Assembly (NCBI GenBank): GCA_965644265.1
Contig: OZ286462.1
Location: 35,154,001-35,218,000 of the forward strand
Source of the DNA: Glycera tridactyla
Taxonomy: Eukaryota
Direction: 5' to 3'
DNA: 64,000 nucleotides
The translations under genes and the position numbers were made by a program. The notes below the pieces were generated by a model that was given only the letters and a program-made list of their open reading frames with translations, did no database searches and had not been told where the DNA came from. Positions 27,900 through 59,800 of the stretch are shown here, piece by piece. Position 1 is the first letter of the stretch, and each line of letters starts with the position of its first letter.

Positions 27900-28790
27900 G
27901 GGAATCTATCCTCTAGTTTTGGTCTGATGCAATATAATTTATTTCACTTTTTGGTTCCCCATTCATTCTTCAAGAGTTGGTCAATATGGAGCTTTATTCT
28001 TGGTTTGACGTCTGAATAATGAATTACCATCTCAGTGACTGGCAGACCTAGAGCTCTTCTGGCCGCTTTATCAGCAGCCTCATTTCCAGGAATTCCAATA
28101 TGGCTTGAAATCCAGCAAAGTCTGACCGTCTTCTTCTGATGTTTGATTATTCTATACTCTTCTAAGATTTGCAAGAGTATACAGTTCCTGAGATGACAGG
28201 AACTTTTGTTTCTCAGAACTCGATATGTATTTGAATGCCATGAGTAAGCCCTCAGTTCAGCTGAGAACACTGTTGACCAATCAGGTACCCTACAGTAATA
28301 GGTTTGTGATTCTGTATAAACAGCTGCTGATGCTTTGCTCTCACATTTGGATCCATCAGTGAAGATGGCCTCATGATCGCTATAAAGCGATCCAATCCCC
28401 AGGTATCTACTTTTGTATAGGGATGGGTTGGTGGTCTCCTTTGTGACCTGAGCCAGTTCTAGGTGTATTTGAGGGACGTCGCAGTCCCAGTCTACGGTCT
28501 GAGCAGGGTCCATTTGTGATATTGGTAGTGTGTCAAAGTCACAACTACAAAAATGACTTTTGTACCTTATTCCAAGAGGAGCTATAAAGCGATTTAATCT
28601 CCAGGTATCTACTTTTGTATAGGGATGGGTTGGTGGTCTCCTTTGTGGACTGAGCCAGTTCCAGGTGTATTTGAGGAACGTCGCAGTCACAGTCTACAGT
28701 CTGAGCAGGGTCCATCTGTGACATTGGTAGTGTGTCAAAGTCACAACTACAAAAATGACTTTTGTACCTTATTCCAAGAGGAGCTATGAT
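27900..28790 (-). mobile_element. Non-LTR retrotransposon fragment (I-group-like RNase H), disrupted, with an internal duplication of about 200 bp
   Basis: IFTDGSK...STVFSAELRA ... LCWISSHIGIPGNEAADKAAR is an RNase H signature; 28380-28585 is duplicated at 28582-28786. Confidence 0.85.
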
Positions 28791-29925: not shown

Positions 29926-30148
29926 CTGAAATCACCTGCCCTAACAACAAATCAGCAAGCCTGTGCTTGAAGGGCAACCCTTAGCATAGAGCCCTGGAAA
30001 CTGCAATCACAGAATTCAAACTTTTGATGCCAATCTGTGAGGGTGATGAGGGCAGTATTTTTGGTGAAATATGATTCACCTTCACTCGAATAATACATTT
30101 CGATCCACATTATGATCATCAGGATAAATTATTGTGAATTCGACTCAC

Positions 30149-30313
30149 CATGGAATTTTATATCCGTCTGGTTTTCAAGGATTGCCCTCCTCTGCAATGT
30201 GTTGTAGGATGAAGGGCACTTCACTGAGATTCCTAGAGGCATCCCAGTTGCTGCTACCTTCCCTTGCAGAAAGGCGATATATGAGCACCGATGATGTGTG
30301 CCTGTTGCTTTTC
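30149..30313 (-). CDS. Gene 2 exon, GTF2I-like repeat core
   Basis: KATGTHHRCSYIAFLQGKVAATGMPLGISVKCPSSYNTLQRRAILENQTDIKFH; ttag / G|GTGAGT. Confidence 0.78.
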
Positions 30314-33300
30314 CTAACAAATATATAAATACATTACCAATACTTGATTAAGTTTTGTGTTTACCATTCATGATATTGCAACAGTTATTCTGTTTTGAGA
30401 AGTGACTTCTCTAAATCAACAGGACTGGGATGAAACACATTAGTCATGGAACGAAATGTTTCTAGAAACACTCTTTGAATAATGGATAACGAAACGAAAC
30501 ACCATTTGTCCTGCCTTAAGGAATCTGGCGCTGCGATCCTCCTCTGCCGGGCGCGCCCTTGACTTTGCACTATGGTCACTGCTACTATCGAATATTGATG
30601 CGCCCGCCCAAAGTTCATCAAATCACTCTCATTCTTGCATCATAATAATGGCCTATCGTGTTATATTTTGCAGAATAAACGTCTAATAGAGACACTTTGC
30701 TCAATTCATCAGTGCGGCTTTAGGCGGAAAACACCCTCATTTTGATAATTTATGTCAAATACGGGCTATTTTTTCATCGCGTCATGACCGCATCCCATTA
30801 CCAAATTCCCCACAACCTTGGTCTGGCCTACGATTTTTTCCTCTATATCATGTTTGAGCATGATGCCATGATGGACAGTGTTTTGAAATCCTATTAGATT
30901 TGGTGGGCTCACTTATTACTTACCTCAATGCATAATATTTCTCCACATGGGCAGCATTGACATGTCTTCAACATTAGGAAATGATTCTGAACTGATGGAA
31001 ATGAACTTTGCAAATCCACTATTTCACTTTATCATTTATCATTCTTGATAGGGCTCCGAGTTCTGTCATTGTCTTGTGCACAATATCAAAGAACAGCAGT
31101 AATAACAGTTGTCTTCTGTGCATATGATATTGCCATAGGAGAGAAGAACTGCATCATCAAGATCCTAAAAAAGTCAAACCTAACTAAGACTGTCTTTAGT
31201 GGCATAAAAAACTGGTCATTGTAGACAGATGGTCTTGGTAGTCAGGTGAACAAACCTCTTCCTGAAACAAATATTACCACTGTGCGGATATTCAGTAGGT
31301 CGCTTCAGGAAGCTGTTAACTCCCAGTGATTATGAGATGAAGCCACACCAAATCAAGGATGTTTGTCAATGAAATCTCTCCCAGCCATCTGCTGCCAGCA
31401 ATGATGGCAGCACTGCATCATGAGTGTTACATGTAAAATGCTATGATTGAACCTATGAAACTATGATTATTAATCCTAAACTGTGACCGCCAGTATCTCT
31501 GTGTATGTTGATATCAACTGATAATGATAGTACTCACTGTAAAGATGGTTGTAAAGGTTCCTGATCTGCTCGTACTCCTGCTTTGCGACACCATCCGCCA
31601 TAGTCGAATCAGCTCTCCTTTCAACTGAAATACATTGGATACCTCAATGAATATCTTCAAGCATGTTCATGTTCCCTAACTTGAAAAACTCTAGTTGAAG
31701 CTTGATTGACCAAGTGAGATTTCTCGTCCAATGTAACCATTGACTGAACAGTGGTCAGTGACAACAATGAGAATGGCTATCACTAGTTCTAAGCAGAATA
31801 CATGTATTTGTGATATTTCTACATCTGGATAGGCAATTCTGTATCAAGAAGTATTCAGACACTGTATTGATCAGCATATCTCATTCAAATGTTCATGCAC
31901 ACTCCTGAACCTACAGCTGCATTCTTGAGTTGGTGCCTGGTGAAGGTGGCAACCTCATACCATTTAGTCAAAACATGTGATCAAATCCATTGTAACTGCC
32001 TGATCCATTGATTTTTGTACATTGAAGTGGGTCATGTTGATAAAAATATATCTGTACTTTCGTGACTGGCTACTGACTCAATGCAAGTTACCTGTGTCTT
32101 GGCCATGATATTACAAGGGACATTCAAGAGTTCACAAATCCGTTTGCTTTGTTTTGGATGGTAGTCGAGCACCAATATCTTTTCAATATCCGTCTCTGGG
32201 TATGCAAATTTAAGATATAAACATTGATTTGGGATTGTTTTGATCTGCTGATATATGGTAAATGATTGGTGAGTTCCCAGTTGAACACTGAATGTACGTA
32301 TTCCAAATTGTTTTACCATTTCACCACTTTCACCAGCTTACTTTGTAGCTCTAGTGTGGAACCACCTCTTTTGAACAGCCGAGATCACTTTGATCACTTC
32401 TGACTGGTGATCACACACTTCAAACAAGGAGAATAATTAATTCTGTGTAATACTCAATATTTGTGTTCATTATGTTCTGTCATATTCATCATGTCTACTT
32501 CCATTCATGCAGAATGCGATGAGAAGAAATCATTTTTGAAGGTGGTGTAGATTTTTTGTGCAAAGCCAAGACAAGTGCTTCTTTTCGGCTAGTAAGTCAG
32601 TAATGTAGAAAGACTGATTTATACATACTACCAGTTGCATTCAGGAAGTCCTTCTTGATTTCAAGTCTATCCACAAACGCCAAACCCTTTCCAGCTCCAT
32701 GAGTGAAGAGCTCCTCATTTCGCCGTATGATAGCCATCCACCCAACATCAGCCACATCAAGTTCCTCGGCTTCTTCAATCTAGTAGCAATACATTAAACA
32801 GAAAATTTATCTCACTTCAAAATATGTTTCACTTCAACATCAATATTGACTAAAGAAAAGTACAAGTTCACATCCTTGGTAGAGTTTGATTCACACACCT
32901 CAAGAGCTGCAAAGAACCTGCTAGAAGACCACCTCCATACAGAGACCATCTGCCTGCAAATACCACAGACCCCAAAACATGGCCATCGCACTATTTTATG
33001 CCACAACCTACCTCTCATGAGACCACACAAACTGCAGTTTCTCCATTGAAAGGTTTTGCTGTAAATTTATGAAGCTAGATGGGGCTAGAGATTCATCACA
33101 GGCCTATGGGTAGATTCCACTTAAAAAGACAATTCACCAACACGAAAATGTTAAACTGATTGACTGATTGTTTGACTGATTGATTGATTGATGTGTGATT
33201 TTTTTATCAAGAATTAGACTCACACGGAATTACAAGTACTATATCGTCCCATGTGAGTACAAAATACAAAACTTACACAAAGCCTGAGCACAAGATGATG

Positions 33301-36188
33301 GGGGTCCTAAAAGGTTGTCAGGTGGAAGTAGCTGGCTCCTCAAGCACACCTCTCTCTACACAACATTAACACATTGAATTTAATGATCCCAGATCTGAAT
33401 GTGTGACTGGCTGGAACCTCACACTCATGCCTATGGGACACAATCGACACCATTGGAATTCCCAGATATATTCAAATTGAAGGACCCAAAGCCTGAGATC
33501 CATCATCAGATTCATCTTTTTTTGAGAAAAGTTGTAAATTAATCCCCATCAAGAATAAATATCATTGGGATGACATAAAATCAGATTCTGATGAGTGGCG
33601 AGTGGAACAGCGCTAACAGTCAGGTCAGAAATATATCAGAATGTATTTCCCACTCTTTTTTCCCTATGAGATAAAGAGTTTCCACAACCATTACTTCCAT
33701 AGCCCATCCAGGGCACTGTAAAAAATGATAATCATTCAGTGCTGCAAATGTCTTGTTTCAAATAGTCACTTTCAGGTCACTCAATACAGAACATGAAATC
33801 TGTATGAGCTACAGTGCAGCTAAATGACGCTGATGATGGGTGAACTGAGAACTCACTAAATCTGCCATCTTGCAACAAATCTGCTTCATGCGAACGATTC
33901 TCTCATCCTCTGTCATCTCATTAGGTTTTAGGACCCAATTGGCAGCAGCAGTCACCCTATAGACTTCTTTCTCCTCAGGAGAGAGATTCAACCAGTCCTC
34001 ATTGATCTTTTTGAGTCTATCCACCTTGCTTGCTGCTCCAACACCTGAATTTGATATAGATATGGAACATGAAAAATTGACCAACTCACTGCCTCAGAAA
34101 GTGATGAGAAAAGTACTGATTTCAACCATGAATTGATACATATTGAGATGAGGGAAGATTCTTTGAAACTGAGTCTCTGAAAGCAATGTTGAGGACCTAC
34201 AGAAAGACTTGGTGTGTTCAGTAACCTGGAGTGGTAGATCTGTCATTCCTGACTGAGGGACATTCTTTTGTGAATATCAGAAGCAGGATAAGGTTGATAT
34301 CATGGCAAATTATGGGCAAAAGGTGGGAACGGGATGACTACACAATTCTTATGACAATTGTATTGCCGCCGTCTTCATTACTGGATCCCCTGACAGAAGT
34401 TGATCAAATTAGAAAAAAGACTGACATTATTGAGACATGTATTGATGGCAAGGCAACTGTCATCTTGTTCAATTTGGGAGAGTGTTTTCTGCCAATTCCT
34501 ATGTTCCCATAAATAGCTGTCAGAGAAATGTCAACATCCATCATAAACAGCAAATGTGGTCATTTCTGTCGGCCGTGTTCCAGGATGCAGGTGTGACATG
34601 ATGGAATTCTGGCACAATTATTCAATTCTGTATAATTCATTGATGAAATCTCATTCAAACACTGAAAACTGTCAATCCAATGATATTCGGCAAATTTGTC
34701 ATCTCACCTATATGTTATGATGCTAATGTGTGTGCTATCCCCCTCACTCCATTATTCCACTAATAATAGGTTTCACTGTATAGTATATACCATAATGTCC
34801 CTAATTACCGACCATCCCTCATTAGCACCCCCTCCTGCCTGAGTGATAGAGAAGGTGCTGCCTAGCATTGAGAGCCCAGAAAATTCAAATTTTCCACTCT
34901 TTTCTTGCCAAGAAGGAAACCAGATCCAACAAGGATGACGATCCTGCCGAAATTTTCACTGTTTTTGGTGAATATTCAAAGGGTATTCGAGATTCATGTA
35001 TGGATAAAACAATATTTGATGCTAACATCTGAAAGATATTTCACCAACCACCGGCATATGCTTGCCAAAATACCTGGTTATCGGGCATTGTAACCCTTGT
35101 AAATTAGCAAGCATCCCAGGGTCTCAATATCGGAAGTATATATTCAAATAATCTTACCTTTCTCTGCCATCACTTTCTTCATTGCTTCACTCCTGAATGC
35201 ATCAAGTCCCCGCTGCTGTCTACGCCGAACATGGATCTGCCTTGATCTTTCCGCCCTTGTTCGGTCTTTTTGATTGTCAATCCATCGCTTAAAAAGATTA
35301 TGATTAACAGTTTCACATCACATAGATCAAAATCGTATTTCATCCAAGGATTTTCTGATCAGAGTAAATAAAGAGGGTTTTTGGACACACTGATACATTT
35401 TCTGAGTGCCATTTTGGAGGTTTGGGTGTTCAAGCTGTATTGCCTTGTCAAGGTACACTGAATGAAATGTGTCTCCTGCAAATTTTGGTGCCTTCCTGCT
35501 CATCTCATTAACATGAACATGGGGTAGATGATTATAATAGTTTAATTACTTGAATCATTAAATTACTCCTCGATGGCAATGTCCCATCATTTCAGAAATC
35601 CATTTTTATCCCAAAATTATTCAAGCAAAACACTGAGATGCTGCTCTGGTGATGGCCGGAAGAATCAGTGAATGTATTGAAATATATATGTGCTACATTG
35701 CTGTGCAAAAAGACTTCAATGCAGCTCCTGATGCCGATGCCAACTGAAATGGCACCTTATGTGTCTGTGAATTTCATATCATTTCACCTTCCATTGGGGA
35801 CCCAGAAGGAGGATTTTTGGAAGATCCCACCCATGCCCATTGCATGGGCGTCACAATATAGCCAAGATGGTGCTGACGTGACGTTAACCAGAACCAACCA
35901 ACCAACCAACCAACCAACACCTTCACTGGGACAACTACAATACCCCATTCAACTTGAGGCGAGGTGAAAGTGGGACCCCATTTTCGCAAGATGCTTGGGT
36001 CCTGCGCAATCAATGGAACCAGAAAATTCTCTTGAATCAAACAGTCTGAAGGTGGATATTTGACCAGCAGGCAAATAGTGATCCCACAAGCAAAACTTTA
36101 TAAAACAAGAAATTTCTTTGAAAAAAAAAGAATGGTCGTTGATTCACAGCGGAGAGGTGGTAATTTGAGAGGGGAAGTATATATATAT

Positions 36189-36939: not shown

Positions 36940-37360
36940 AAATTTGAATAAAATCACAAATTCGATATGTCAAATGTTGCATATATCCAAGTCACAGGGG
37001 GGTGAAATTCAAATTCAAATTCACCCGCCCCCACCGAAAAACAACCGGTCCGAAAATCGTCTTCTGCGCACATTGTTGACATGTCACGCTGTGAGCCCAT
37101 GAAAGCAGTTCGCTGATTGGCAGATTTTGCCGCAATTTCAGCAATCTGGCCAATCAGGGACTGCGACAGGTATCTGTGTCACTTCTTGATCACTTCCAGC
37201 ATTAAAGATGGCGATTGGTCTGACGAAACTCGCGCGAATTTGACAAATAAACTTTTGGCGAATTTCAGATGCAATTCGATGATATTTACAACCCGCCCGA
37301 AAAATATCGATCCGCCCGACCCTGATTTCGGCACGCCCGAGACGTTCGGGAGGTGATCTC
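36940..37360. promoter_or_regulatory. CpG-enriched promoter-like segment with three CCAAT boxes and a YY1-type core
   Basis: ATTGG 37116-37120, CCAAT 37150-37154, AAGATGGCG 37205-37213, ATTGG 37214-37218; immediately upstream of the first visible gene 2 exon. Confidence 0.45.
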
Positions 37361-40049: not shown

Positions 40050-42950
40050 GTGGTACAGGCAGATATGTAAACTCAGACCAGGAACTAAACTACCCGAAAT
40101 TCGACTTCTGTCAGAACCACAGGTGGGAAGTGTGATATCGTGATATGTCTGAAATGGGCTAGTACTGTGCTTTACACTGGTACCAAATATGTGTGGCTAC
40201 CACTCTTGATGGCTATGCTACCAACCAAAAACTGGCTCAAAAATGGCATTTTTTGGCAATTTAGCCGACTTTTGAGGCATTTTGATCTGATATCTTTGCA
40301 ACCGGATATGGTATTCATAATATCATGACAATTTAGCAAAGCAGAGATATGGGGCATTCCAAAACTTCCATATTTTGTGAACAGAGCCTCTTGGTTCACC
40401 GGTAATTGGCAGATATGTAAACTCAAACCAGGGACTAAAATACCCGAAATTCGACTTCTTCAAAAATCAATCAATTCATGCAACCATGGGTGTAATCAAC
40501 GAGTATTGGGCCAAGAAAGATATTCTGATGCATTTTTGGAGCTATGACCATAGAAAGTGACTCAAATCGGGGGTCGTTTTTCTCGGAAATCACCATTTTG
40601 GCTATATTTTACCATTAACTCCGGAACCACGAGTGGGAAGTGTAATATTGTGACATTTCTGCAATGGGCTAGTAGAGCGCTTTCCGTTGGTACCAAATAT
40701 GTGTGGCTACCATTCTTGATGGCTATGCTACTGATCAAAAACTGGCTCAAAAATGGCATTTTCTTTGCAATTTCGTCGACTTTTGAGGCAATTTGATCAG
40801 ATATCTTTGCAACCGAATATGGTATTCATAATATCATGACAATTTAGCAAAGCAGAGATATGGGGCATTCCAAAACTTCCATATTTTGTGAACAGAGCCT
40901 CTTGGTTCACCGGTAATTGGCAGATATGTAAACTCAAACCAGGGACTAAAATACCCGAAATTCGACTTTTTAAAAAATCAATCAATTCATGCAACCATGG
41001 GTGCAATCAACGAGTATTGGGCCAAGAAAAGATATTCTGATGCATTTTTGGAGCTATGACCATAGAAAGTGACTCAAATCGGCGGTCGTTTTTCTCGGAA
41101 ATCACCATTTTGGCTATATTTTACCATTAACTCCGGAACCACGAGTGGGAAGTGTAATATTGTGACATTTCTGCAATGGGCTAGTAGAGCGCTTCACACT
41201 GGTACCAAATATGTGTGGCTACCACTCTTGATGGCTATGCTACCAACCAAAAACTGGCTCAAAAATGGCATTTTTTGGCAATTTAGCCGACTTTTGAGGC
41301 ATTTTGATCTGATATCTTTGCAACCGAATATGGTATTCATAATATCATGACAATTTGGCAAAGCAGAGATATGGGGCATTCCAAAACTTCCATATTTTGT
41401 GAACAGAGCCTCTTGGTTCACCGGTAATTGGCAGATATGTAAACTCAAACCAGGGACTAAAATACCCGAAATTCGACTTCTTCAAAAATCAATCAATTCA
41501 TGCAACCATGGGTGTAATCAACGAGTATTGGGCCAAGAAAGATATTCTGATGCATTTTTGGAGCTATGACCATAGAAAGTGACTCAAATCGGGGGTCGTT
41601 TTTCTCGGAAATCACCATTTTGGCTATATTTTACCATTAACTCCGGAACCACGAGTGGGAAGTGTAATATCGTGATATGTCTGAAATGGGCTAGTACTGT
41701 GCTTTACACTGGTACCAAATATGTGTGGCTACCACTCTTGATGGCTATGCTACCAACCAAAAACTGGCTCAAAAATGGCATTTTTTGGCAATTTAGCCGA
41801 CTTTTGAGGCATTTTGATCTGATATCTTTGCAACCGGATATGGTATTCATAATATCATGACAATTTAGCAAAGCAGAGATATGGGGCATTCCAAAACTTC
41901 CATATTTTGTGAACAGAGCCTCTTGGTTCACCGGTAATTGGCAGATATGTAAACTCAAACCAGGGACTAAAATACCCGAAATTCGACTTCTTCAAAAATC
42001 AATCAATTCATGCAACCATGGGTGCAATCAACGAGTATTGGGCCAAGAAAAGATATTCTGATGCATTTTTGGAGCTATGACCATAGAAAGTGACTCAAAT
42101 CGGGGGTCGTTTTTCTCGGAAATCACCATTTTGGCTATATTTTACCATTAACTCCGGAACCACGAGTGGGAAGTGTAATATTGTGACATTTCTGCAATGG
42201 GCTAGTAGAGCGCTTTCCGTTGGTACCAAATATGTGTGGCTACCATTCTTGATGGCTACGCTACTGATAAAAAACTGGCTCAAAAATGGCATTTTCTTTG
42301 CAATTTCGTCGACTTTTGAGGCAATTTGATCGGATATCTTTGCAACCGAATATGGTATTCATAATATCATGACAATTTAGCAAAGCAGAGATATGGGGCA
42401 TTCCAAAACTTCCATATTTTGTGAACAGAGCCTCTTGGTTCACCGGTAATTGGCAGATATGTAAACTCAAACCGGGACTAAAATACCCGAAATTCGACTT
42501 CTTCAAAAATCAATCAATTCATGCAACCATGGGTGCAATCAACGAGTATAGGGCCAAGAAAAGATATTCTGATGCATTTTTGGAGCTATGACCATAGAAA
42601 GTGACTCAAATCGGGGGTCGTTTTTCTCGGAAATCACCATTTTGGCTATTTTTGACCAATAACTACAGAACCACAAGATGGAACTCTGATATCATGACAT
42701 TTATGAAAAGGGCTTGTGTAGTGCTTTCCGTTGGTACCAAATATGTGTGGCTACCATTCTTGATGACTACGCTACCAACAAAGAAACTGGCTGGAGAATG
42801 GCCTTTTTGGCAATTTGGTCAACTTTTGAGGCATTTTGATTGGATATCTTGGCAACCAAATATGGTATTCATAATATCATGACAAATTAGCAAAGCAGAG
42901 ATATGGGGCATTCCAAAACGCCCATGCTTTGCAAACAGAGCCTCTTGGTT
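40050..42950. repeat. About 511-bp tandem satellite, about 5.7 copies, with sequence variants
   Basis: Equivalent positions at 40557, 41069, 41579, 42090, 42601. Confidence 0.95.
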
Positions 42951-45019: not shown

Positions 45020-47130
45020 CCAAACATAGCCTTCAATGAAGGCGGACCTTGTCTCAACTAAGCCAACTCAAACACCTCGAATATGAGATGAAGCAACTCA
45101 TCAGAAGTCACATCTGGTTCACCAAGGGACAGGCACCATCATTTGAAAAATCTGTTTCTGAAAACATGTTTTCGTCCCCAAAATCTAGCAAGGTTTTCAT
45201 CGGTTCCCATCCATGGCAGGCATTTGGGAAGGAACACTATGGAAGGCATCTGTGTCAAGTTTGGTGTGGTTTGAGGGAGCAACAATCTTCAGGAAAAATC
45301 CATTCCTGAAGTCAATCAGCATTGTCGGGAGCCCTAATCCATGGTTGACATTCATTAGGGAATGATATAAATTACATCTGTACCAAGTTTAGTGTGGCTA
45401 TGGACAAACAACCTCTCAAAACCAACAAGACCTCACAAGAGCACTATCTGTGGCCAGCGTCCATTAAGGGAACTTATGAATTGCATTCATGCCAATTTTA
45501 GTGTGGCTATGGACATCCACCATCTTCTGAAAAATCCATTTCAGAAAAAAAAAACAATTCTCTCCCCAAAACCAATCAGGTCTGCTGGGAGTCCCTCTCC
45601 ATGGCTGGCATCAGTTAGGGAATGCTATGAAGTGCATACATGCCATATTTGGTGTGGCTATGGACAACCACCGTATTTAGAAGAATCCATTTCTGAATAA
45701 CCAATGTTGACCCAAAAATCATCCAAGCCTGTTGGGAGACCCTGTCCACGGCCAGCATGCATTAAGGGATGCTACGAAGTGCACCCATGTCACATTTGGT
45801 GTGGCTATGACGACCGCCATCTTTAGAAAATCCCTTTCTGAAGAACCAATTTTGACCCCAAAATCAATCAAGCCTGTTGGGAGACGCTGTCCATGGCTGT
45901 CATTCATTATGGATTTCTATTAGGTACATCTGTACCAAGTATGGTGTGGCTACTGACAGCCAAACTCTTTAGAGAAATCTGTTTCTGAAAAAAAAAATTC
46001 CACCCCAAAACCAACCAGAGCTGTCTGGAGACCCCATTTATGGCTAGCATTCATTGGGGAATGCCATGAATTGCCAAGTTTGGTGTGGCTATGGTCAGCC
46101 ACGCTCTTTCGAAATATCCATTTATGAAAAAAAAAATCACCTCAAAACAAACCAGGCCTGTTGGGAGACCCCATTTATGGTTAGAATTTATCAGGGAATG
46201 CTATGAATTGCATCCATGCTAAGTTTCTTGTGGCTAAGGACAGCCGTCATCTTTAGAAAAATCCATTTCTGAAAAAAATATTTGACCCCCAAACCAACCA
46301 GACTTGTTAGGAGAGCCAATCCACGGATAGCATTCATTAAAGAATCATAGGAGATCCATATGTATCAAGTTTGGGATGGCTTGGTATTGATAAACTCAGT
46401 TCAAAACAGTGATTTTTGACCCCAAATCACCTATCTTGCACCTAGACATGTGGAGAATCAACTGCAAACTGAACATGAATAAATTGGATCATCATGAATA
46501 TCACAGAGATGGCTCATCATTTCAAAACACAATTTCCAACCCGAAATCGATCAAGCAGAACACAGGGATGCTACCTTGATGATGGCTGAGTTCATTAGTA
46601 GATGTACTAAAGTATATGCATCCCGAATTTCATGCACCTAGACCCTCTAGTTGCTGAGCAATGTGACTTCAACGTGACTTCAACATTGCCCCCTGATGAC
46701 CGAGTCCCATCATTTCGCGAAAACCCAATTTTCAACCCGAAACTAATCAAGCAGAACACTGGGATGCCACCTTGATTATGGCTGGATCCATTTGTAAATG
46801 TACAGTGAAACCTGCAATGGGAGACCCCCTGGTGAGAGACCACCTCCGACGGGAGACCGCTTTTCCAGGGCGGCTTTTCTATCTGACATAGTCAAATATG
46901 CCTCCGACGAGGACTTTTTGATGACATTTGGGGAAGTCTCTCGTCGCAGGTTTCAATGTAATGGAGTATATGCAGGTGAAATATCATGGAGCTAGGCCCT
47001 CTAGTCGGTGAGCGAAGGCACTTCAACATAACTTCAACATGACCTTAACGCCGACCTCAACACAGATGAGAATGCCGACGCCGGAGTGACCGCAATACCC
47101 CTGCAACTTTGTTGAGACAAGGTAAATTTG
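45020..47130 (+). mobile_element. HINE/Helentron-like non-autonomous element with about 9 internal tandem units of about 145 bp
   Basis: 5' palindrome GCCTTCA-A-TGAAGGC; repeated cattagggaatgctatgaa...ccaagtttggtgtggctatggac units; 3' gacgccgacgcc plus hairpin-like end. The family assignment is inference. Confidence 0.5.
46803..46958. mobile_element. 156-bp MITE
   Basis: ta-CAGTGAAACCTGC ... GCAGGTTTCAATG-ta. Confidence 0.85.
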
Positions 47131-47390: not shown

Positions 47391-47837
47391 TCATAAACCA
47401 ATATCTGCCAGGTCTGCCAAATCAGATGGTGAAAGAGACTCCAATTCAAACTCATCTTCCAGATACAACTCCTCCTGTTCAGCTTCATCTTGCAGCAGTT
47501 GTTGAAGCCCACAAGTATCATAAGAAACCTCTGGAAGATGAGATGAATCGGACAATTCAGGGATCAATGCAGAAAACAGATTTTTTGCACGATCTCTCAA
47601 CTGACACAGTCCAACACATTTTTTTTTTAGCAATGCTCTAGCACCAGTACATAACTCATCAGCAGTCTCTGCATTTTTGAGGGAAGCAATTCTCTCATCC
47701 AAGCTGGTTATTAAGCTCATCATCTCCGACCTTGTGGCTTGCATCTCCTCAAGACTCCTGGCTTTGCGGTTGTTGAGGTCAACCAATTCCCTCTTGATGT
47801 TCTTTGGGATCTCGGGCGAGGAAGTTGATGGGTTAGT
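47391..47837 (-). CDS. KDZ transposase terminal exon (coiled-coil-like region, acidic tail, stop)
   Basis: TNPSTSSPEIPKNIKRELVDLNNRKARSLEEMQATRSEM...EDEFELESLSPSDLADLADIGL*; ttccag acceptor. Confidence 0.85.
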   Translation of the reverse strand, partial: TNPSTSSPEIPKNIKRELVDLNNRKARSLEEMQATRSEMMSLITSLDERIASLKNAETADELCTGARALLKKKCVGLCQLRDRAKNLFSALIPELSDSSHLPEVSYDTCGLQQLLQDEAEQEELYLEDEFELESLSPSDLADLADIGL

Positions 47838-50800
47838 CTGGAAGATCAAAACCATGATGCAATTAATAACAGAAGATAAAATGACACAATTAATAACAGA
47901 ACATGAAAGACAAATCTTTTCATGAATGCAAAATAATACTGACTTCAGATGTACATGTAGATGCTTGTTTATCAAAAGTTTATGCTGTAGAATGTGGAAT
48001 TAGAATACCATTCTGACAAACACAATAGCTCATAAGGATATCTTTTGAAGACAGATTAGTATTGATGTCAAGCATTTTCTCACACATTATGACTTGACCT
48101 GTGTTATGAAAGTGCAACTGCTCAGTTGGTGGAAAAATCATGTTCGTGGATAGATTTGACTGCAATGTGGCAAGTACAATGGCACAGCCTACTGATATTA
48201 TCTGTTTGGGATGAGCTACTGATGGAACTTTAAGATATTTATGCGGAGATGAGATGCATCAAGATATTCAAAATTGGGTCAAGTGGCTTATTGTATCAAC
48301 AAGTTGGGGCCAATGTGACATTTTAGGGGGTCAATTGAAGGGAAGCAATAACCAAATTTGGGGAGATTTGGCCTTGCACTGTTACCAAAAAGTGGGCCCC
48401 ACTCCCACAACCTCAACACAATGCTGTTTATGTCCACTTACCTCTGAAGACAGGAGTACGAAAACATCAGCTGTGGTGCACTGGATATCATCCGTGCTAA
48501 GTGTATTTGGTAGGCGGGAATATTGCGTGAAGTGCTGCTCGTTATATAAAGCAAGTAGGATCTTCACTTTCTGCCCGACTTTAGTAATCTGGCGACTGAT
48601 ACGCCCTGCTATCGCCTGTCCAGCTGTAACAGAAACAAACCAAAAACTCTGAGAGGAGAAAGTTTCCAGCAGCTTTGCTAGTACTGAAGTTGTTGTCAGC
48701 ACACCATCACATGTGTACAGTATACACTGTTTTGCAACCTGAATTTCAAGAATTGGGAATATTGTCCCTTGGGATAGAAGAAATGGGGGCCTCTCTTCTA
48801 AGGACATATTTAAAATGTGTTTCCTCGAGGATGTTTGTAGTAATTTTCAGCATCATGGCCCACACTCAGAAAATGCTCTCATGCACTCTCTGGATGCAAT
48901 CCCATATATGAAACATATTGAAGCATATTAAACTCTAGCAGAGAATGTCAACTGGCAATATCTTTTCCAAAATGAAAACAAAAGTTTCACATGCAGGCCA
49001 TTCACGGTGATAAAGACAAAGTCATACACATACATCCATGATTCATCATTCATCCGCTTGTCTCATCAGCCTTACCCGGGCTGCAATACAGCACTCAGGC
49101 CATTGTCATCGATGGGATCATTGGAAAAAAAAACATTTTCCTGGCAGGGCTCAACGTTGGGACTGGCACCTAAAAATTTCGTTTTGATTGCCAGGTAATT
49201 TTTTTCAGTAGCAAACTGATTTTCAATTTGGTCGCCAACCATTTTTTTTGGGTGGCCGAGACAGTTATTGACCTTATATGACCATCCCTCCTCAAGGTAT
49301 CTAGGGCTGTGGTCCTCGGTGAAAGTCATGAGCCGATTACCCGTGGCACCATGGCCAAGTACATCGACAAGAGGACATAAAAATCTTGAACTTACATGAG
49401 TACTTTGATCGAAGATGGATGAGGAAGGACTTTTCCTCAACTAATGCCAGTAGCTTGCAGAGGAAATGAACTTTGGAGTTCATTTCAAACACCTCCAATT
49501 CTGAGAGATAATCCAGCGTATTTCGTCCCCATCTACTGAAGCCATGGCGGTTTTCAGTTTCTCGCAGTTTCCTGTAAGTACAATTAGATGGCCATGAAAT
49601 GAGGATCATTTCAAGCTTTCCTACTCTGTGATATGATCAGATACCAACTCAGCAGGGGGAGAGCTTCATTATGCTAGGTGATGCAGGTAGTGACATGTAC
49701 TATTGGATATCAGAATATCAGGTGGCAGATCTGATGATTTTGAATATTCAAGCCGCACCTGATTGCTCACACCAGATGGGCGCTCATTGAGCCCATCAAC
49801 AGGAGGATACCATGTTTGATGAGGCTGACGAGTTTAAAATTTCAGATGCTCTCTTAGTTGTACTAAATATTGAATGAATGCTTTGGTGGGCAATAGGAAA
49901 AAAAATGCCAATGCTGACAATTCCAATCCCATCTTATTACAATAAAATAAGGTTCAGTCACGATACAAGCTTTTATGGTTGTGTGGAAGATAGGATCTAT
50001 TTTGTCTTCTACTGTCCATTGCATGATGCCCCGACCTGACGGAATTTGGTGAAATAATTGAAATCCTTTATGAGATCAGGATAAAAGCTTCATACTCAAC
50101 TACATAATTTGTCCATATATCCATTTGATATTATACCATTGATGTCTCAATAACACACTGATAAGGAAACAACCAGTGTATCAACCCAGTGAAATATGTA
50201 TCTAAGTTAGATGTATGATTTAAGTAACACATCTGCTTGATTGATAGGGTGACGACTATCCTCTGTCAGATGTAACACCACTTAGTTGTCACAGCAGTAT
50301 GTGCTGAAACATAACCAAGACTGCTAGCCTCAGCAAAGATTGATGCCATGGACTTTGCAAGGCACCAAGTTGGGTAGGCCCACAAAGGGCTGGTAGTGCT
50401 AATAAATTTCATCTTTATTTTCTTTATTCTTTGGTTTTTGTCATCCATTTCTCTTGACAGTCATCTATTTATCTTGACAAACTGTTGTCTGATATTGTCC
50501 CACCAAAATTATGAAATGCTTGATAATGACTCATTAATAAAAGATTGTTGACTGTTACTTACAGAGTGAGAATCTGGAACTTCTCTGTGTCCTCAGATCC
50601 TTCTTCATGGTCACTGATTGTATCCCTGCAATGAGCACATTAGTATCAGCTGAGCATGCACTTACAGGAAGTACAATAAAACCCAAAAGACCACCTTAAA
50701 ATACAAGAAAAGGGGGTCATTCATGACAGGCCATACATGTATTTCATACAATGCTAGCAACCAATCTTCTTCTGGATACGCACTGATGATTTCAGAAAAT

Positions 50801-53800
50801 ACCAGAAAATATATTCAAGGAGGCATACATCTTTCTGAACACATATCTACTCGAAAAAATATAACCATAACTCATCACATGAATTGATTTGATTGCTGCT
50901 GTCAATATTGTTTCAGCTACTATATCCTTCACCATTATACCAGGTAATGGCCAACAAAAAGTTACATGGGGTAAAATGACTTAAACTATATGTATCATTG
51001 TCTGGAATGTCGGAACTGGATGTAAATGCCATTGTAGGTTGAAAGCACATCACATGGGCAGCATTGACATGTCTTCAACATTAGGAAATGATTCTGAACT
51101 GATGGAAATGAATTTTGCAAATCCACTATTTCACTTTATCGTTTATCATTCTTGATAGGGCCCCGAGTTCTGTCATTGTCTTGTGTTCATTTAGAGCACT
51201 GGTAAATGTACGTTGTAGTAGATGCCCATCAGAGATCATCTAATTAAGAAGTCAAAATTAATTAGGGAAGAAAATGGTTGCTTGAGAGGGTTGGTCATTT
51301 GTCCAGAAGCCAGTGCTCATAGCCCTTCAATTTGGCCCCCGCTTGTCATGATGCAATCAGGTCAGCAAATAGCAAAGTAATTTTCACATCATGTTGAAAT
51401 CCGATTAGATTTGGTGGGCTCACTCATTACTTACCTCAATGCATAATATTTCTTCAGATCTGCAACATACTTCTGTTTCCACACAGGCCCCGTACCTGGA
51501 AAGAAGTTGAAATATCTGAGTATCTAATCAAATGGAATTGTTTCAGAAGACAGCACATCTTTGGAAATGTTTGAATTGCAGCCAAACCTGAATATAACAC
51601 AGTCCAGCCCAAAGCAGTCATTGCAAGGAAGTGGTCATCTTATGTGGGGTGGATATGTGTGAAATAACTAGTGATAAACAATGGTCAGGAGCTACAGTGG
51701 AAATGTTGATAATGATGATCTTGATGAATCTTATTCTCATTATAGAAGAAAATCATGCAGGCAAGGTTCACTGAAAGTGACAAATGTAACTCAAACAGCT
51801 CTTCATGTGTGTATTTCCATGCAGGCCTATTCAAGGAAAATCACTTTTATTGGCAGGAAAGGCAATCATTTCACCAGCATCGTGGCACAGATCCAATTTC
51901 GTTTTCAGACAAAAATACATGTTCTGATATGACTGGTTGCTGTATTGTTTTGGTCACCATCTTGTCATCTGCATGGCATGCTCACTCATGCTCGCTCATC
52001 CAGGATATGGCTACCACATATCAATGGACATCATGTTATGACGTTAACCCAGGAGATGCCAACTGTAACACTGACATTGAGGTTCAAAAGTGGGACCTGG
52101 CCATGAAATACGTGCCATATACTCGCTGTGCCAAACCTTCCTCTAAACCACACTCACATATGCATGAGCATGTATGCATGTGGGTGAGTTGGTGTGTTGC
52201 AGAGGGAAGGAAATAGGGAGTGAGCATGTATTCCTGGAAAGAGAATAAGTGCCGAAGAAGTCGACAACAGTCATAACAAAGGACTCCATAATACCCTGAG
52301 ACCTGTGACCAGAAATGAATGACAAAATAACAGACTAACATTCTGCTGCGCATTTAAATCAAAATTGTCACAAGATATCAAATGTCAAGCGCATATCTGT
52401 GAAGTCAAAGGTCAGAAGGTCAAAAAGACATGCATAGACTCACCTACTGGTACCCCTCATGGCTTGTCCACTTGTCCCCAAAGTGATAGTGTATCATCTA
52501 CACAGTGTTCACAGCCATACCAAAATGTTGTTTACAGACACACACACAGACAGATGTATTGAATCTGAATTCCCCCACCCCACACACACCTCCAGTTAAA
52601 TGACACAGTATCATATATTGATGAGGAGATTTGTCTGGATCTCATGAGCCTGTGGAAACCTTGCAGTATATCATCTACTACGATAGGTATACTGGTTCCA
52701 ATCTCTGAAATGGGGTGGGTGAAATTCAATCAATGTACCTGCCATAATACAGGGGGCAAACAGGCCTATACACATACCTTGTTGGATTCCTCCAGATGGC
52801 CTGTTACCCATTGACATCATCTCTTCCTGGTTCCACTCACTGATCTCCTGCTCACTGACAGCCACTGGAAGGAAGAAAATGAGATCAAATGCATGATAGA
52901 AATCACAGAACATCACCATATGCATGTTGGGTTAGTTGGTTGTTTGGAACAAAATGAGAAATACATGCCACTGAGGCTTTAGCCCCAAATTTGATCAATA
53001 ATATGGTGAATACAGTTGAGTCTTCTCAGGAAACACTTAGAGTATGAGGGCCACCTAACCAGTACCTACAAAGACCACCCAAAATAATACCAAAACAGCA
53101 TTTCATACATTACTTCACATTTAGTTTGACTGTCCGGTCTTGAATTGGAAAAGTTTAATGAAACCTGGTATTCCGGATTGATTCAGCAACAGGTAACAAC
53201 AGACATATTTGCTGAGTATGTAGTATTTGTGCTCAATGATGATAGTTGCGGCGTCATAAAACTGGATCTTCCAAAGTTGGTAATCCAGCACTAATGTGGT
53301 TTTAAATTGTGCTCCACTGCCCATTTATAATTCATCAACTGGATATGCAAATCATTGGAAACACATGAATGCAGTTATCCATCTACTGAACACCATATCA
53401 ATTACCTGTTAGGCTGTTCATTAGTATCAGTTGGTTCTCTGTCGCCTGTGCATACAGCTTCTCGGCAGCCCGGTGTCGCTCCACCAAATTCAAATCTACC
53501 AGAAATCAATCAAAGCAATCACAGTTGTCTAGATACTATCAAAACATGAAAAAAGTTACATATGTCAGGTGACCTACACTAATAAGTTTGTGATCCAGTA
53601 AAGATAGCTGCAGTATGCTTCCCCGTCAAATTTGAATCAATGAGTAAGAATTAACCACTATGATCACCATAGATTGATCTAATAGCAAGGTATTTACTTT
53701 CATATATGGAATAGCTGGTGCCCACTTGCGCACTCAGCCAATTACACAGGTGATCTGAGTGGGGGCCATGTGTGATGTTGGAAGTTTGTATGGCAGCAGG

Positions 53801-56800
53801 CATACCATTTCATAAATTAAATGCTACTGCCACTGCACAGAATAGCCTTACACAAGCCAACAATGCACATGAAGGCCCTTTTTCTATATTGTAAGTAGAC
53901 CTCATTCAAAGAGCAGGAATCTTGTATTGGGTTGGTATGAGTGGAGAGTAAAGTTCGTTGTTGCACAGTGAAACTCAAAATTCACCCGCCTGTCACTTCA
54001 TGAAGGAAGGGTGAGAAGTGATGATTGGTGAAATTTCAACCTACCAAGTGAAGCTATCTTTTTCTCAGCAAAATGCCTCAATGCTGCAGAGAGCAACTGG
54101 TTCCTGTGCGTTGCTGTCTGCTCTTCAGTAATGAGGTTGAATCGCCTTATGAAAGACCAAAGGCGTTCCATTTGCTCGCCGTCAATCATTCCGAAGCCTT
54201 CCTTTCTTCTTGGACTATACTTCAGCTGTAAAATAAAGGCAAACACTTCAGTAATATTCAAATTGGTCTTCTGTTATGTTTAGAAAAATTTCAGATCAAG
54301 CTATTTCATCATATATGCATACCTGCCATGTCGTTCAGTAGTGATCCACCATGGTTTCAGTAGTTTTGGTTCAGTAGTGATTTTCTCATCATTTTCAGTA
54401 GTGATATTCACAACTCAGAATCCATGCACATGAATGTATTTACATGTTCAGATAAAAAAATGGATTCTTATGCAAATCAGTGTTGAAATATTGACACTAT
54501 AACTTGTGAAACTATCAGGTTTCATTCAACATTTCATGAATATTTATCAATCCTGTCCTAGCAACATTTTTTTTTGGGATCATGCTTCATTTCTGAATCA
54601 GTAGTTTGTCACGGGCATCAGTAGTTCAGTTTGACCTCATTTCAGTATTCAGTAGTAGTTGACAGGTATGTATATGGATATCTTGGATAAGTCCAAGTAA
54701 ACAGAGAAAAACTCTAAGAGGGACTCTTCCCCATTTCGCTAATAGGAATGACAGAAGAATACTAGAATATATCTACTCTGCTGTCTATATTTTCTTTCAT
54801 TTTATGCTATGAAGGCAGTAGTTTCCAATGTGATCTTCTCTGAATGTAGAAAAGTAAATCATGACTGCACATCAGGTGCCCAATATCAACTGATCAGATG
54901 GGGAGTTGTCACGCTGACCTTCACATGGGCCAGCACTACTAACCCATACAAATAGCACTAAGAAGTGAAAAAGGAATGAAAAAGCTATGTATGCATTAGA
55001 TGCATTTTATTTCTTTTCTCCCACTTATTGGTCCATGGGCAATGCATTGTGAATAAAAAAATTGGAATCAAAATGCTTTAAATTACATCTGTGACAAGTT
55101 TGGTGTAGCCAGGTCAGTCAGCATCTTCAAGAAAATCCTCTCTGGAAATGCAATTTTGTCCTATGAATCAGTGAGGCTCGTTGGAAGACTCCATTTATGA
55201 AAGGCAGACATTAGGGAATGCTATGAGATGCATCTTTGTCAAGGGACAAGGATGCTGCCCTGGGTACTGAAAAACCCACCAGAAATGACAGGTTTTAGTC
55301 AATTGAAAAATTGATGTGTTGCCGTCAAATCAAATTGGGATGCTGAATGGACGATGGCGGGATACATTAGAAATGGGACATATTTAAGACATCAACATCA
55401 TTGATGTGTGACCTCAACACTGCTACAGGAATGGGAGTGGATGCTGCAGCAACCGCAATACCTCTCTCAACTTTATGGAGGTGAGGTGAAACTGACCAGC
55501 CTGTTTCTTAATGTTTTACCATGCCAGGCTTTGATGAAGGGCAAGTAGAACCCTTTCATCAGTGTATGAATTCTTTTTGTTTGGGTTTCAGAAACATAAC
55601 TTATCCATTTGAAAGCATTGAAAGCATTGGAATCGTCCAGCTCCAGTTGGGGGGGGGGGGGTATTTGCAATATTCCTCAGCATGTAATGCTCTGGATATA
55701 TCTAGTATCTGATTTGTCTCCGGACTAGGAGGCAAATATTCACATTTCACATCTGTCTGAATGTGGTGATTAAGAAAACAAGATAATGTCTATCAAAACT
55801 CAGCTTTTAGCATTTCATATTTGATGTGATTTCAAATTGCATTTTGGGAATTACCTACCTGGCATGATGCTTGATGTCCGTAGCAGTGAAATACTGGTAT
55901 GGCCAGGCTAATCTTTTCAAGCAAGTCTTTGTCTCCTGATTTCTGAAACATATTAGCATTTTGGGAATTACCTACCTGGCATGATGCTTGATGTCCATAG
56001 CAGTGAAATACTGGTATGGCCAGGCTAATCTTTTCAAACAAGTCTTTGTCTCCTGATTTCTGAAATAAATTAGCAACATTGTCTTGACAGACAAACCGAA
56101 TCAAACGGATATGCTCATTAGATGATGATGCATATCTCAGTTTGCAGCACATTGCCATCCCTTGGTTGTAAGGTCATGAAACTAAATGACCTGTAATGAA
56201 CCATCCTCTGTATTTACCAGAATATTTGATCATAAAAATTGCATATTCTAGTATTCAAACCATACTTCTGTTAAATATGTACAAGTGGACTCATATGATT
56301 CAGATGGAATCAGCTGATGTGCTTATTATAACTATTTTCCGAATTTTGTATGATCATTTTTCTGTCAGACCGTATATTTCATTGTTTTTATGTGTATATT
56401 AAACAGTTCAAAATTGGATTGAATTGGCATAGTGAGTGACTTGGTGAGTGTAATGAGATATACTCACTTCCAGATGGGAGGTAAGCACGCAACCAATGTC
56501 ATATAACACATTCAAATCAATGGACTCGTCGAATGACTCGATCAGGTTTTTGATGAGAAAGACAGGGTATGCAAGCCTGAAATCACAACCAGATGGAACT
56601 ATACAAGATGAACTGGAACTGTACTCTAGAAGATGACTAATGACCCCCCCCCCCCTCCCCCTCCCGCACTCACCCCAGCCAATTTGAACTTATGAGCACC
56701 ACAATTTAGCATTCAAGATGAGAACATCAGGTCTGGGTACTGTAGCCATAGTGTACACACAGGTAGGAAGTCACATAATATTTTCCATCATTCGGGTATG

Positions 56801-59800
56801 ACATCTTTGAGAATACTAAGATTCAGCTATCCTCAGCCTTTCCATCTACATTGAAAATAATTATTCTATAATGAAATGGGCCCCCTCAAGGACCAAAATT
56901 ACCTTGATTACTGCATTTTATTGACAATAAAATCACTCTGGAAATATCTGATTATATCCATGGGTCGAGACAGCTTCACACCTGGACAAAATAGCAGTCA
57001 CAACCACAATTTGCTTCTCTTTGGGCTCTAATTAACAGCCAAGGAAAGCCAACACACAAAATGGAACAGTTGGAGTCTGCTATCTTTGAACTGACTCAAA
57101 CTCTGCGAAGTCATCGACACCTGCAACAACCTCTGTGACATCATCAATTGTTTAGATAGCCTAGCAATACTTTCACAATAATTTTATGAATAGTGTCTAT
57201 AGTGAATTGACTTTTGACATTTCACACATCCAACTCACCTCTCTCCATGTATGAGATTCATGAATAGCAGAGGAATCTCGTGCTTACAGCTGGATCCCAG
57301 CACACCAGTATACTGTAATTTCGCTGCACGATTTTTGCTTCGCAGAATATCACCAGCTTGGAATCGATTGCATTCCTGGAGGGACAGTGGCATAGTTAGC
57401 TCACTCAGTTCAATCATGTACAATACAAAGATACATTCTGGAAAAGCTGCTCCATGGAGTGATATGTCCTGCTCGCCTGACTGAAGTCATGATTGGAATC
57501 TTGATCGATGTTGATGATGAGAATGATGGCAACAACAGAATATGATATGCATTTGTATTGCCCATGTTATAGCATTAAGGAATATATTTCTTCAGGTTCA
57601 TAGGCAGAAATCTGATCAAATCTCACCTGTAACACCTCCCCCACAAGCAGACTCACAACACCTACACAATTATGCCTGCCTTCATAATGCATGTGTGTGA
57701 GTGGATGTGTTTGTGTGTGTATGTACATGCACACTTGTGTGCATAGTGGGGGAGGGGGTTGAGGCTCTGTTCTATTATACATTGGTTGAGGGGGGAAGTG
57801 CTAGACATTATCAACAACCCTATTACATTACAGAAATAGAGACAACAGAAACATTGTTAATTTCGAAGAACCTTCCATATTGGTTCTATCATCTCAAACA
57901 ATTCCAAACTCACAAATGAAAAAGGTCTTCTTTTCCCTCGAAATAACCCAATTACATATAATAGAATATGGAATATCATATGCCTACGTTATTTTCCAAA
58001 TACAGATACATATGTACCGTATATACTCGCGTATAAGCCCATTTCTTTACGACAAAAAATCGGGGCAAAAGATGGGGGCGGCTTATACATGAGTATACAT
58101 TTCGTCAGAGCCAAATATCAATGTAAACGAAGATCCATGAGCTGGTGAAGGTTTCTCTAGCAGCCGCCGCCATCTTTGATTTTGAAAGAACCACCGAAAA
58201 AACGTGCAAATATCATCAAATTTGACAAGGTTCCCCAACAAATAAGATTCTATCCATGCAAGAGATTTGTCAGCAATATTGTTCTATCTATCATGCCATA
58301 AGCTGTTAGTCAATCCATTGCATGGTTCTCGAGAAATCAATCTTTTTATAACATGGAATCCATTACGAGTACAGATGCCATAGCCAAACACTGACCAGTT
58401 GAAGACTGATTCTGAAAACAATATTTTTCACAACTCACAATCTCTCTTGAAATGCCCGAAATACTGCCAGATGGCAATGAATAGTCCCATATGTACAAAT
58501 ATCTAATCTAATGCCACAAATGATGATCGTTTGGTAGGATATTCCAACAAATTCACCATAAACGTGATGAAAACAAGGCCTGTATAACCATCCGATTGTG
58601 TTAGGCCATTTTGATCATCATCAGATCACATGATCAAATGACCAAATATGGCAAAGAACTAGAATTTTTTTGTTGCATAATTTATAAGTATATATGACGT
58701 AATTCCAGGGTTTCCCTTTATATTCAAAATGCCAGCATCGTCACATGATACAACAATGACACTCAAATCGCTATGGAAGAAGCCAGCCTTTTCTTTTCAT
58801 CGCCAAATACATGCTCATGTGGCTTTGAAACATGTTTTCCTTGACGGAGATTGCCCCAACATGGATTGTACCCTTGAATCATTGAAGTGTGGAGGCGAGA
58901 ATAAACCAACAATATCCATGATAAGCTGCAAAATGGCTTCTCTACACAGCTGTCTTTGATATATTGTGACACTAGTCACCGTCTTCAACAAAATCGGGGG
59001 GAGGCTTACATTCAAATAATTCCCAACTAAATCCCGACTTTTGGAGGCAAAATCGTACCCGGGATTATATGCGAGTATATACGATATACCAAATTTCAAG
59101 AATGATGGAGCAATATTGATGGAGTGAGGCTTCAAAGAAAAAACCTAACCAAAATCTTAACCAAGACTTAAACCAATGTTAACGATGCAAACGCTGACAC
59201 CGACACCGACGCCGACACCTATGCCGACGGAATGGTAACACCTATGTCCCGCCAATGCTGAAGCAGGCGGGGCAATAAATCCAATCAGGCAGTGAAACCT
59301 GAGGTGAAACCCCTGAAGATATCTACTTCTAAAATGTAGTTTGAATCTTTATGGAATAATAGGATATAACTAGTATAAAAGATTGATCTAAATATGTGAC
59401 CAGACAGCCCAGAATGTCAGCAAAAAGCCATATCTAAAAATATTGGACAATGTCAGATATGAATGCAGACCTAAGAAAACAGTTTCTTGTCAGAGGTGGT
59501 CTCCAGTCAGGAGGTCTATTGAAGCAGGTTCCACTTTTCAGTTTATTCATCAGGAGGTTGATGACAAACAAGTGGCAAATGAGATTTTCCTTCTTCACTA
59601 TTAAGTGAAAGACACTTGACTATGGAGATCATATTAAGTGAAATGAAAAAATGACTGAATCCATACTCACTCCAGCTCCTGCTTTTTTATGGTCATTGTA
59701 ACCAGCAACAAATCTGTTGACAGCTTCTTGCTGAAGGAAGTAAGCTGAAGCCTTGTCAACATCTGCACTCTTTCTTTTCAGCACCAGACCGAAATTTCCA

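Follow-up and report, generated by a model that had tools for sequence, protein, structure and literature searches.

A predicted seven-exon gene carrying a single I-repeat, the repeat that characterizes the vertebrate TFII-I proteins (Pfam family GTF2I), lies on the minus strand of a 64,000-nucleotide stretch of the Glycera tridactyla genome (NCBI GenBank assembly GCA_965644265.1, contig OZ286462.1, positions 35,154,001 to 35,218,000 of the forward strand; this whole stretch is hereafter the window, numbered from its first letter). With moderate confidence, we read this locus as a host gene with one genuine I-repeat, whose exons 4–6 are homologous by descent to exons 2–4 of vertebrate TFII-I and from which a neighboring KDZ transposase gene is separate. 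On this reading, exons 5 and 6 would encode one GTF2I-type I-repeat within a host gene that appears to be spliced in the RNA of a related organism, and exons 4–6 (an N-terminal-like region, a linker with helix 1, and the remainder of the repeat, respectively) would have descended together with the vertebrate exons; given that homology, the gene would be a one-repeat invertebrate relative of the TFII-I family. The gene as a whole is best read as a new combination of flanking regions around one I-repeat in a non-vertebrate gene. The three exons on which the argument turns are as follows.

Exon 4, 32779-32632, minus strand: 148 nt, phase 0 to 1, like the vertebrate TFII-I N-terminal region (bird exon 2).
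Exon 5, 31624-31538, minus strand: 87 nt, phase 1 to 1, linker and first helix of the I-repeat.
Exon 6, 30313-30149, minus strand: 165 nt, phase 1 to 1, last two thirds of the I-repeat.

An earlier note on this DNA, made from the sequence alone, had pointed to the exon 5/6 pair as an I-repeat-like module, and upon checking the sequence and splice sites we found the location, strand and translated peptide to be as it gave them. Both exons have canonical splice sites (acceptor tttcag/TT and donor A/GTGAGT for exon 5, acceptor ttgttag/GA and donor G/GTGAGT for exon 6, the slash marking the exon boundary) and are joined in frame via a split AGA (Arg) codon. The HMMER comparison with the Pfam GTF2I model (PF02946, gathering threshold 27 bits) was passed by exon 6 alone (27.7 bits, E = 3.6e-6) as well as by the 83-aa peptide from spliced exons 5 and 6 (E = 1.6e-8, profile positions 4–71 of 75), with the addition of exon 5 lifting the score from 27.7 to 35.2 bits. 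A phmmer search of the PDB sequences yielded ten matches, eight of them repeats of TFII-I, GTF2IRD1 or GTF2IRD2 (best 2eje, E = 0.0028). When a repeat HMM made from six bird and four crinoid repeats was used to search 1260 six-frame segments of the window, the exon 5/6 site was the sole match (E = 9.5e-10; runner-up E = 1.9), and the repeat is therefore single both in the gene model and in the whole window, as had been claimed. Across an 18-sequence alignment of bird, crinoid and fragment repeats (see below), G23, P25 and P33 are invariant and Y11, I44 and I51 nearly so, and the window repeat carries the core motifs G-[LM]-P-x-G and P-[ST]-x-[YF] together with the I-x-F end. A word-indexed protein search with the 83-aa spliced peptide gave no match among its candidates, which were limited to proteins of 46–145 aa, and the ESM Atlas queried with exon 6 gave scores of at most 0.77, none of them usable.

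The predicted fold points in the same direction. AlphaFold was run on exon 6 only (54 aa, from an 18-row alignment), helix 1 in exon 5 thus lying outside the model, and returned a mean pLDDT of 80.3. In the Foldseek search of this model against the PDB, ranks 1–10 were taken by all ten solved GTF2I domains (probability 0.94–1.00, TM 0.65–0.75, rmsd 1.2–2.0 Å over 42–47 residues), and from rank 11 downwards the probability was at most 0.06. The Foldseek E-values were merely 0.02–0.6 because the exon 6 query is short, and the fold test depends in part on the sequence evidence since the input alignment included vertebrate repeats; read with that dependence, the model places the GTF2I domains as the top structural matches of exon 6. 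Similarity to the GTF2I repeat, the lack of which the earlier note had named as fatal to its identification, was thus found by both Pfam and Foldseek, and the identification as an I-repeat is borne out by profile, fold and gene structure alike.

Regarding gene structure, we compared the window gene with a crinoid protein (on locus L004), a loon (Gavia stellata) GTF2I protein (on L005) and the bird proteins P0097, P0004 and P0005. The window repeat, all four crinoid repeats and all six bird repeats are interrupted by a phase-1 intron, which in each case falls in the codon following the aromatic (or Cys) residue at which helix 1 closes; this phase-1 split after helix 1 is a criterion derived here, not a published one. 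The exon encoding the second half of the repeat is 165 nt long and phase 1-1 in the window and in 4/4 crinoid repeats, whereas the bird counterpart has 184–187 nt and runs from phase 1 to 2. A maximum-likelihood tree built from 16 repeats, which rests on few alignment columns, grouped the crinoid repeats together (100/99), and likewise the bird repeats (91/88, with an R2–R5 subgroup), and set the window repeat with five database fragments (81/81). The tree fits a separate multiplication of the module in each lineage, such that the split-repeat module with its phase 1-1 exons may have multiplied in crinoids and, separately, in vertebrates. At the crinoid locus (L004 10001–26996), the exon ends read in the repeat region are all phase 1, in half-repeat and linker exons alike, and this region therefore illustrates well a module whose exons lend themselves to duplication.

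Relatives of the repeat were sought with HMMER by searching exon 6 against 1.84 billion cluster representatives, which gave 10 matches. Two of these (P0001 and P0009) are low-complexity repeat proteins without a GTF2I domain and were discarded as false matches, while the bird GTF2I proteins P0004 (UniRef name GTF2IRD1) and P0005 were among those retained. The nearest relatives of exon 6, at 43–50% identity and with the same RCSY-type short repeat, are five fragments from Logan/ENA contigs (P0003, P0006, P0007, P0008 and P0010; single exons on contigs of 0.6–2 kb), all matching Pfam GTF2I with E = 1e-9 to 3e-12. The exon of the fragment on contig L001 has 162 nt and is phase 1-1, the same exon form as window exon 6. 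P0006, a 152-aa fragment on a Logan contig, seemingly reads from a first half of vertebrate type, which includes an IPY..F stretch, into an RCSY-like second half-repeat, a layout that hints at multi-repeat genes in yet another organism.

A fuller relative was found in the crinoid Anneissia japonica, whose XP_033122800.1 (P0002, on locus L004), named 'zinc finger protein 665-like', contains four GTF2I repeats (E = 1.4e-32), preceded by an N-terminal homeodomain-like region and followed by a long array of C2H2 zinc fingers. It differs from the window gene in having four repeats rather than one, with a repeat identity of just 26–28%, and in having neither the TFII-I N-terminal-like exon nor the chromo-like tail. 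The two proteins also resemble each other at their N-termini: window exons 1–2 align with the crinoid N-terminus (residues 9–58 for exon 1) over 53 aa with 36% identity (E = 4e-4 against a database of three proteins), and the exon 1/2 intron falls at the same spot in both (K/RWI in the window, K/NWI in the crinoid). Region 1–500 of the crinoid protein, used as a word-indexed query, returned itself alone. The statement in the earlier note that I-repeats define vertebrate GTF2I, GTF2IRD1 and GTF2IRD2 is outdated in view of the four crinoid repeats. A literature search found no paper on I-repeats outside vertebrates; non-vertebrate I-repeats are thus already in public databases, unremarked in the literature that we found. 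[quoted passage not shown]

The window repeat and vertebrate TFII-I share the I-repeat sequence, the fold and the motifs G-[LM]-P-x-G and P-S-x-[YF]. Among the bird repeats the closest are R1 and R6, at 33–36% identity as against 24–26% for R2–R5. The window repeat differs from the vertebrate form by two 2-residue gaps, one where it has RCSY in place of V-x-VPY and one in a shorter loop. At the level of the whole protein, bird TFII-I has six repeats and the window gene one, and the latter has extra homeodomain-like and HMG-like exons in front and a chromo-like exon behind. Among the surroundings of the gene in the window, none of the neighbors of the vertebrate locus was recognized.

The link to TFII-I beyond the repeat itself comes from exon 4. 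In vertebrate TFII-I a conserved N-terminal region stands just upstream of repeat 1 in a 0-to-1 exon, which is how exon 4 stands in the window. In a single BLASTP comparison with residues 1–111 of P0004, exon 4 showed 41% identity over 37 aa (E = 2e-5), and in the same test with residues 30–140 of P0005 there was no match. An HMM of the bird N-terminal region, run on the 1260 six-frame segments, scored that of exon 4 best (E = 0.005, as against 0.5 for the runner-up), the match covering profile positions 42–78 and the first 41 TFII-I residues having no detectable counterpart. None of 17720 scored shuffles attained the 13.5 bits of exon 4 (shuffle maximum 11.3), and hhalign against the bird N-terminal profile gave a probability of 65.6% (E = 5.8e-5). 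The profile is a narrow one, because the search with region 1–111 of P0004 returned bird GTF2I alone. With the whole gene model as query, BLASTP against P0004 gave one colinear alignment (175–297 to 42–182) that takes in the N-terminal region and repeat 1. The exons themselves correspond in order, window exon 4 (148 nt, 0 to 1) to bird exon 2 (aa 34–80, 139 nt, 0 to 1), exon 5 (87 nt, 1 to 1) to bird exon 3 (135 nt, 1 to 1) and exon 6 to bird exon 4. Mainly because of the exon 4 match and these agreeing exon boundaries, we consider it fairly likely that exons 4–6 are a block inherited from an ancestor of the TFII-I genes, although the sequence evidence for this is modest.

The rival that survives best is exon shuffling only, whereby the phase 1-1 exon pair was inserted into an unrelated homeodomain-like/HMG-like gene and exon 4 has nothing to do with TFII-I. 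Such an event would suit repeat exons that are all phase 1-1 in the window and the crinoid, which is the classic form of a shuffling module, as well as a crinoid protein in which the same repeats stand beside very different domains (C2H2 fingers) and an exon 4 match of only modest strength. However, it leaves to coincidence that the window's top match to the TFII-I N-terminal profile sits directly upstream of the repeat, as in vertebrates, that its phases are those of bird exon 2, and that its score was attained in 0/17720 shuffles; we therefore regard shuffling alone as unlikely, and keep to inheritance of the three-exon block as the favored reading.

The complete gene model comprises seven exons (36900-20246, minus strand) with an open frame of 1101 nt (366 codons); all introns are GT-AG, all junction phases are compatible and a single frame is kept over 16.6 kb. 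In addition to exons 4–6, its parts are the following.

Exon 1, 36900-36724, minus strand: 177 nt coding from ATG 36900, N-terminal homeodomain-like region.
Exon 2, 35287-35158, minus strand: 130 nt, phase 0 to 1, homeodomain-like third helix and basic stretch.
Exon 3, 34044-33857, minus strand: 188 nt, phase 1 to 0, HMG-box-like stretch, unconfirmed.
Exon 7, 20451-20246, minus strand: 206 nt including the stop, candidate terminal exon, chromodomain-like, unconfirmed.
Promoter-like stretch (putative), 37105-37240, minus strand: three CCAAT/ATTGG boxes 200–330 nt upstream of the ATG, read from the sequence.

The donor of exon 1 is AAG/GTGTGT and an in-frame TGA immediately precedes ATG 36900, and at the other end the acceptor of exon 7 (tttttgtag/GT) fits the phase of exon 6. 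The flanking domains are named by likeness: the Pfam scan gave no match for the homeodomain-like region of exons 1–2, HMG_box matched exon 3 under the cut-off and with partial profile coverage (E = 0.017–0.019), and Chromo matched exon 7 with E = 0.34 at best. A single-sequence AlphaFold model of exon 7 came out all helix with a pLDDT of 61.7 and was discarded. Intron 6 measures 9.7 kb and contains an N gap, no N stretch falling within any exon. The same intron holds a 249-aa open frame on the minus strand (27947-28693) that belongs to a non-LTR retroelement fragment; it matches an RNase H domain in Pfam (E = 1.1e-7) and overlaps a 202-bp tandem duplication at 28379-28787.

Evidence for splicing was drawn from public contigs of a related organism (run X1, whose RNA nature is guessed), aligned to 30050-35400 of the window; a run search with a 1.6-kb stretch had returned no run, and one with exon 6 alone returned X1 as the only run. 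One X1 contig spans 31537-31624 and then 32631-32692, which is the predicted exon 5/exon 4 junction with its intron at 31625-32631. A second spans 33963-34037 and then 35176-35290, joining exon 3 to exon 2 close to the predicted sites, with 10 unmatched letters as against 25 in the window and thus a 15-nt in-frame difference. A third spans 30149-30286, its match ending exactly at the exon 6 donor and 13 further letters following. Introns were uncovered save for repeat stretches, to which X3 or X2 also align with low identity and very high depth. In intron 3, a GATT/CAATCA-type simple repeat with an adjoining element (33093-33450) draws X1 and X3 contigs with a summed depth in the thousands; this is the signal of a high-copy transcribed or contaminating repeat and is unrelated to expression of the repeat gene. 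Because identity between X1 and the window is ~93–98%, X1 is taken to represent a related organism or strain rather than the individual that was assembled. Six differences were listed (codons read by eye): four synonymous third-position changes (30219, 34004, 35231 and 35252) and two conservative replacements (Q>R at 31579 and R>K at 35241). Contigs across two junctions together with mostly synonymous changes indicate that the gene is spliced as predicted at those places and looks constrained.

Several points weigh against the favored reading and temper our confidence in it. The exon 4 match is short (36–37 columns) and modest (13.5 bits; hhalign 66%), and the profile behind it is bird-only. 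No X1 contig crosses the exon 3/4, 5/6 or 6/7 junctions, and the full seven-exon transcript is for this reason a model. In principle, the X1 joints might equally come from a processed DNA copy; the RNA label of X1 is a guess and its source is a related organism, not the Glycera genome. Finally, TFII-I family proteins feature several I-repeats each (2 to 6), whereas the window gene has a single copy, as against 4–6 in the known multi-repeat proteins.

Upstream of the repeat gene on the same strand stands the transposase that gave rise to the idea of a mobile source for the repeat.

KDZ transposase gene, 47391-62778 (part confirmed), minus strand: multi-exon, separate from the repeat gene, identified by Pfam.

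This gene matches Pfam CxC1 (E = 2e-10 at 62416-62778) and carries the pieces of KDZ (PF18758) in profile order at 59632-59829, 57238-57486, 56411-56689, 55835-56173 and 54001-54273. Its 5' end lies at or past the window end, and its last open frame ends with TGA at 47393-47391, 10.5 kb upstream of the repeat gene's ATG. Within one KDZ exon (55833-56075) a 117-bp tandem duplication (2.1 copies, 95% match) doubles in frame a 39-residue stretch with an HCYGH motif, and Pfam shows two KDZ stretches there. The interval between the two genes contains N gaps as well as two tandem arrays: at least four head-to-tail units of ~510 bp at 40175-42800, visible as the same 47-aa and 95-aa open frames every 510–511 bp and overlooked by TRF because its maximum period is 500, and a 147-bp satellite at 45451-46340 (6.1 copies, 72% match).

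The earlier note had described the I-repeat gene as transposase-linked, which is true insofar as a KDZ gene is adjacent on the same strand; a fusion it is not, since the KDZ gene has its own TGA (47393-47391) and the repeat gene its own ATG (36900) and three CCAAT boxes. The KDZ element might nonetheless have served as partner or carrier, the transposase and the I-repeat gene forming one two-gene unit, mobile or jointly domesticated, that spread the I-repeat. To its credit, the genes are neighbors in the same orientation, the order of the KDZ domains is undisturbed, and GTF2IRD2 illustrates that I-repeat genes can join a transposase. Against it, the two genes have separate stop and start, and their combined span exceeds 43 kb with repeat-filled introns, unlike an active element. 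No terminal inverted repeats were found between 12 and 64 kb, just microsatellite-based inverted repeats, and the window has no second copy; nor was a second copy or a like pairing noted in 566 scanned windows, and the 10 kb around the crinoid homologue showed no KDZ homology, although absence from such limited sets makes for weak evidence. The intron splitting the repeat is common to vertebrates. We accordingly hold a two-gene mobile or domesticated unit to be quite improbable, and the suggested mobile-element reservoir gained no support, since neither a second copy in the window, nor terminal inverted repeats between 12 and 64 kb, nor KDZ homology in the 10 kb around the crinoid gene came to light. 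Instead, the intron position held in common and an exon 4 that resembles the TFII-I N-terminal region lead us to prefer vertical descent over a mobile source.

The vertebrate precedent does not alter this picture. GTF2IRD2 reportedly consists of I-repeats fused to a Charlie8 hAT transposase, and like the window it brings an I-repeat gene together with transposase-derived sequence; in GTF2IRD2, however, the hAT part is in the same reading frame, whereas the window has a transposase of the KDZ type in a separate gene 10.5 kb off. The hAT part of GTF2IRD2 joined an already existing I-repeat gene, and the fusion is therefore no argument for a transposon origin of the repeat. Both window genes are adjacent on one strand and apparently intact, and one could imagine that they were domesticated together and work as a coupled pair, in which a nuclease or recombinase has its own partner for targeting DNA and chromatin, and that ancestors of such pairs moved the I-repeat between lineages, but we give this idea little credence; the adjacency of the KDZ gene is probably incidental.

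That there is no functional gene here at all, merely chance open frames or a decaying pseudogene with residual I-repeat likeness, is hardly credible: a protein search found no annotation or protein of the repeat gene and the neighboring homeodomain-, HMG- and chromo-like domains miss the Pfam thresholds, but one frame runs through all seven exons across 16.6 kb, their splice sites being canonical, the PF02946 match exceeds the curated cut-off, and the spliced contigs of a related organism, at ~93–98% identity and with mostly synonymous changes, largely refute a pseudogene. Elsewhere in the window, 7861-10800 is taken up by ~3 kb of simple sequence, a degenerate (GATG)n type whose GC skew is strong (0.54), and its long minus-strand open frames of IHPS-like repeats are no evidence of a gene.

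For the host gene with one I-repeat that we favor, a function can be proposed from its relatives. By analogy with TFII-I and GTF2IRD1, the repeat would most likely allow a nuclear factor to bind DNA and contact proteins, and pairing may be mediated by the N-terminal-like region that exon 4 encodes. Taken together, the window gene and the crinoid protein mean that the I-repeat and its split-exon structure predate vertebrates, and, if the exon 4 match is true, so does the whole block of N-terminal region and first repeat. A transposon source for the I-repeat domain is then no longer needed. If the favored reading is true, the six-repeat vertebrate proteins, which are linked to Williams syndrome, would be the product of later internal multiplication, and a one-repeat form would be available for studying how a single I-repeat acts.

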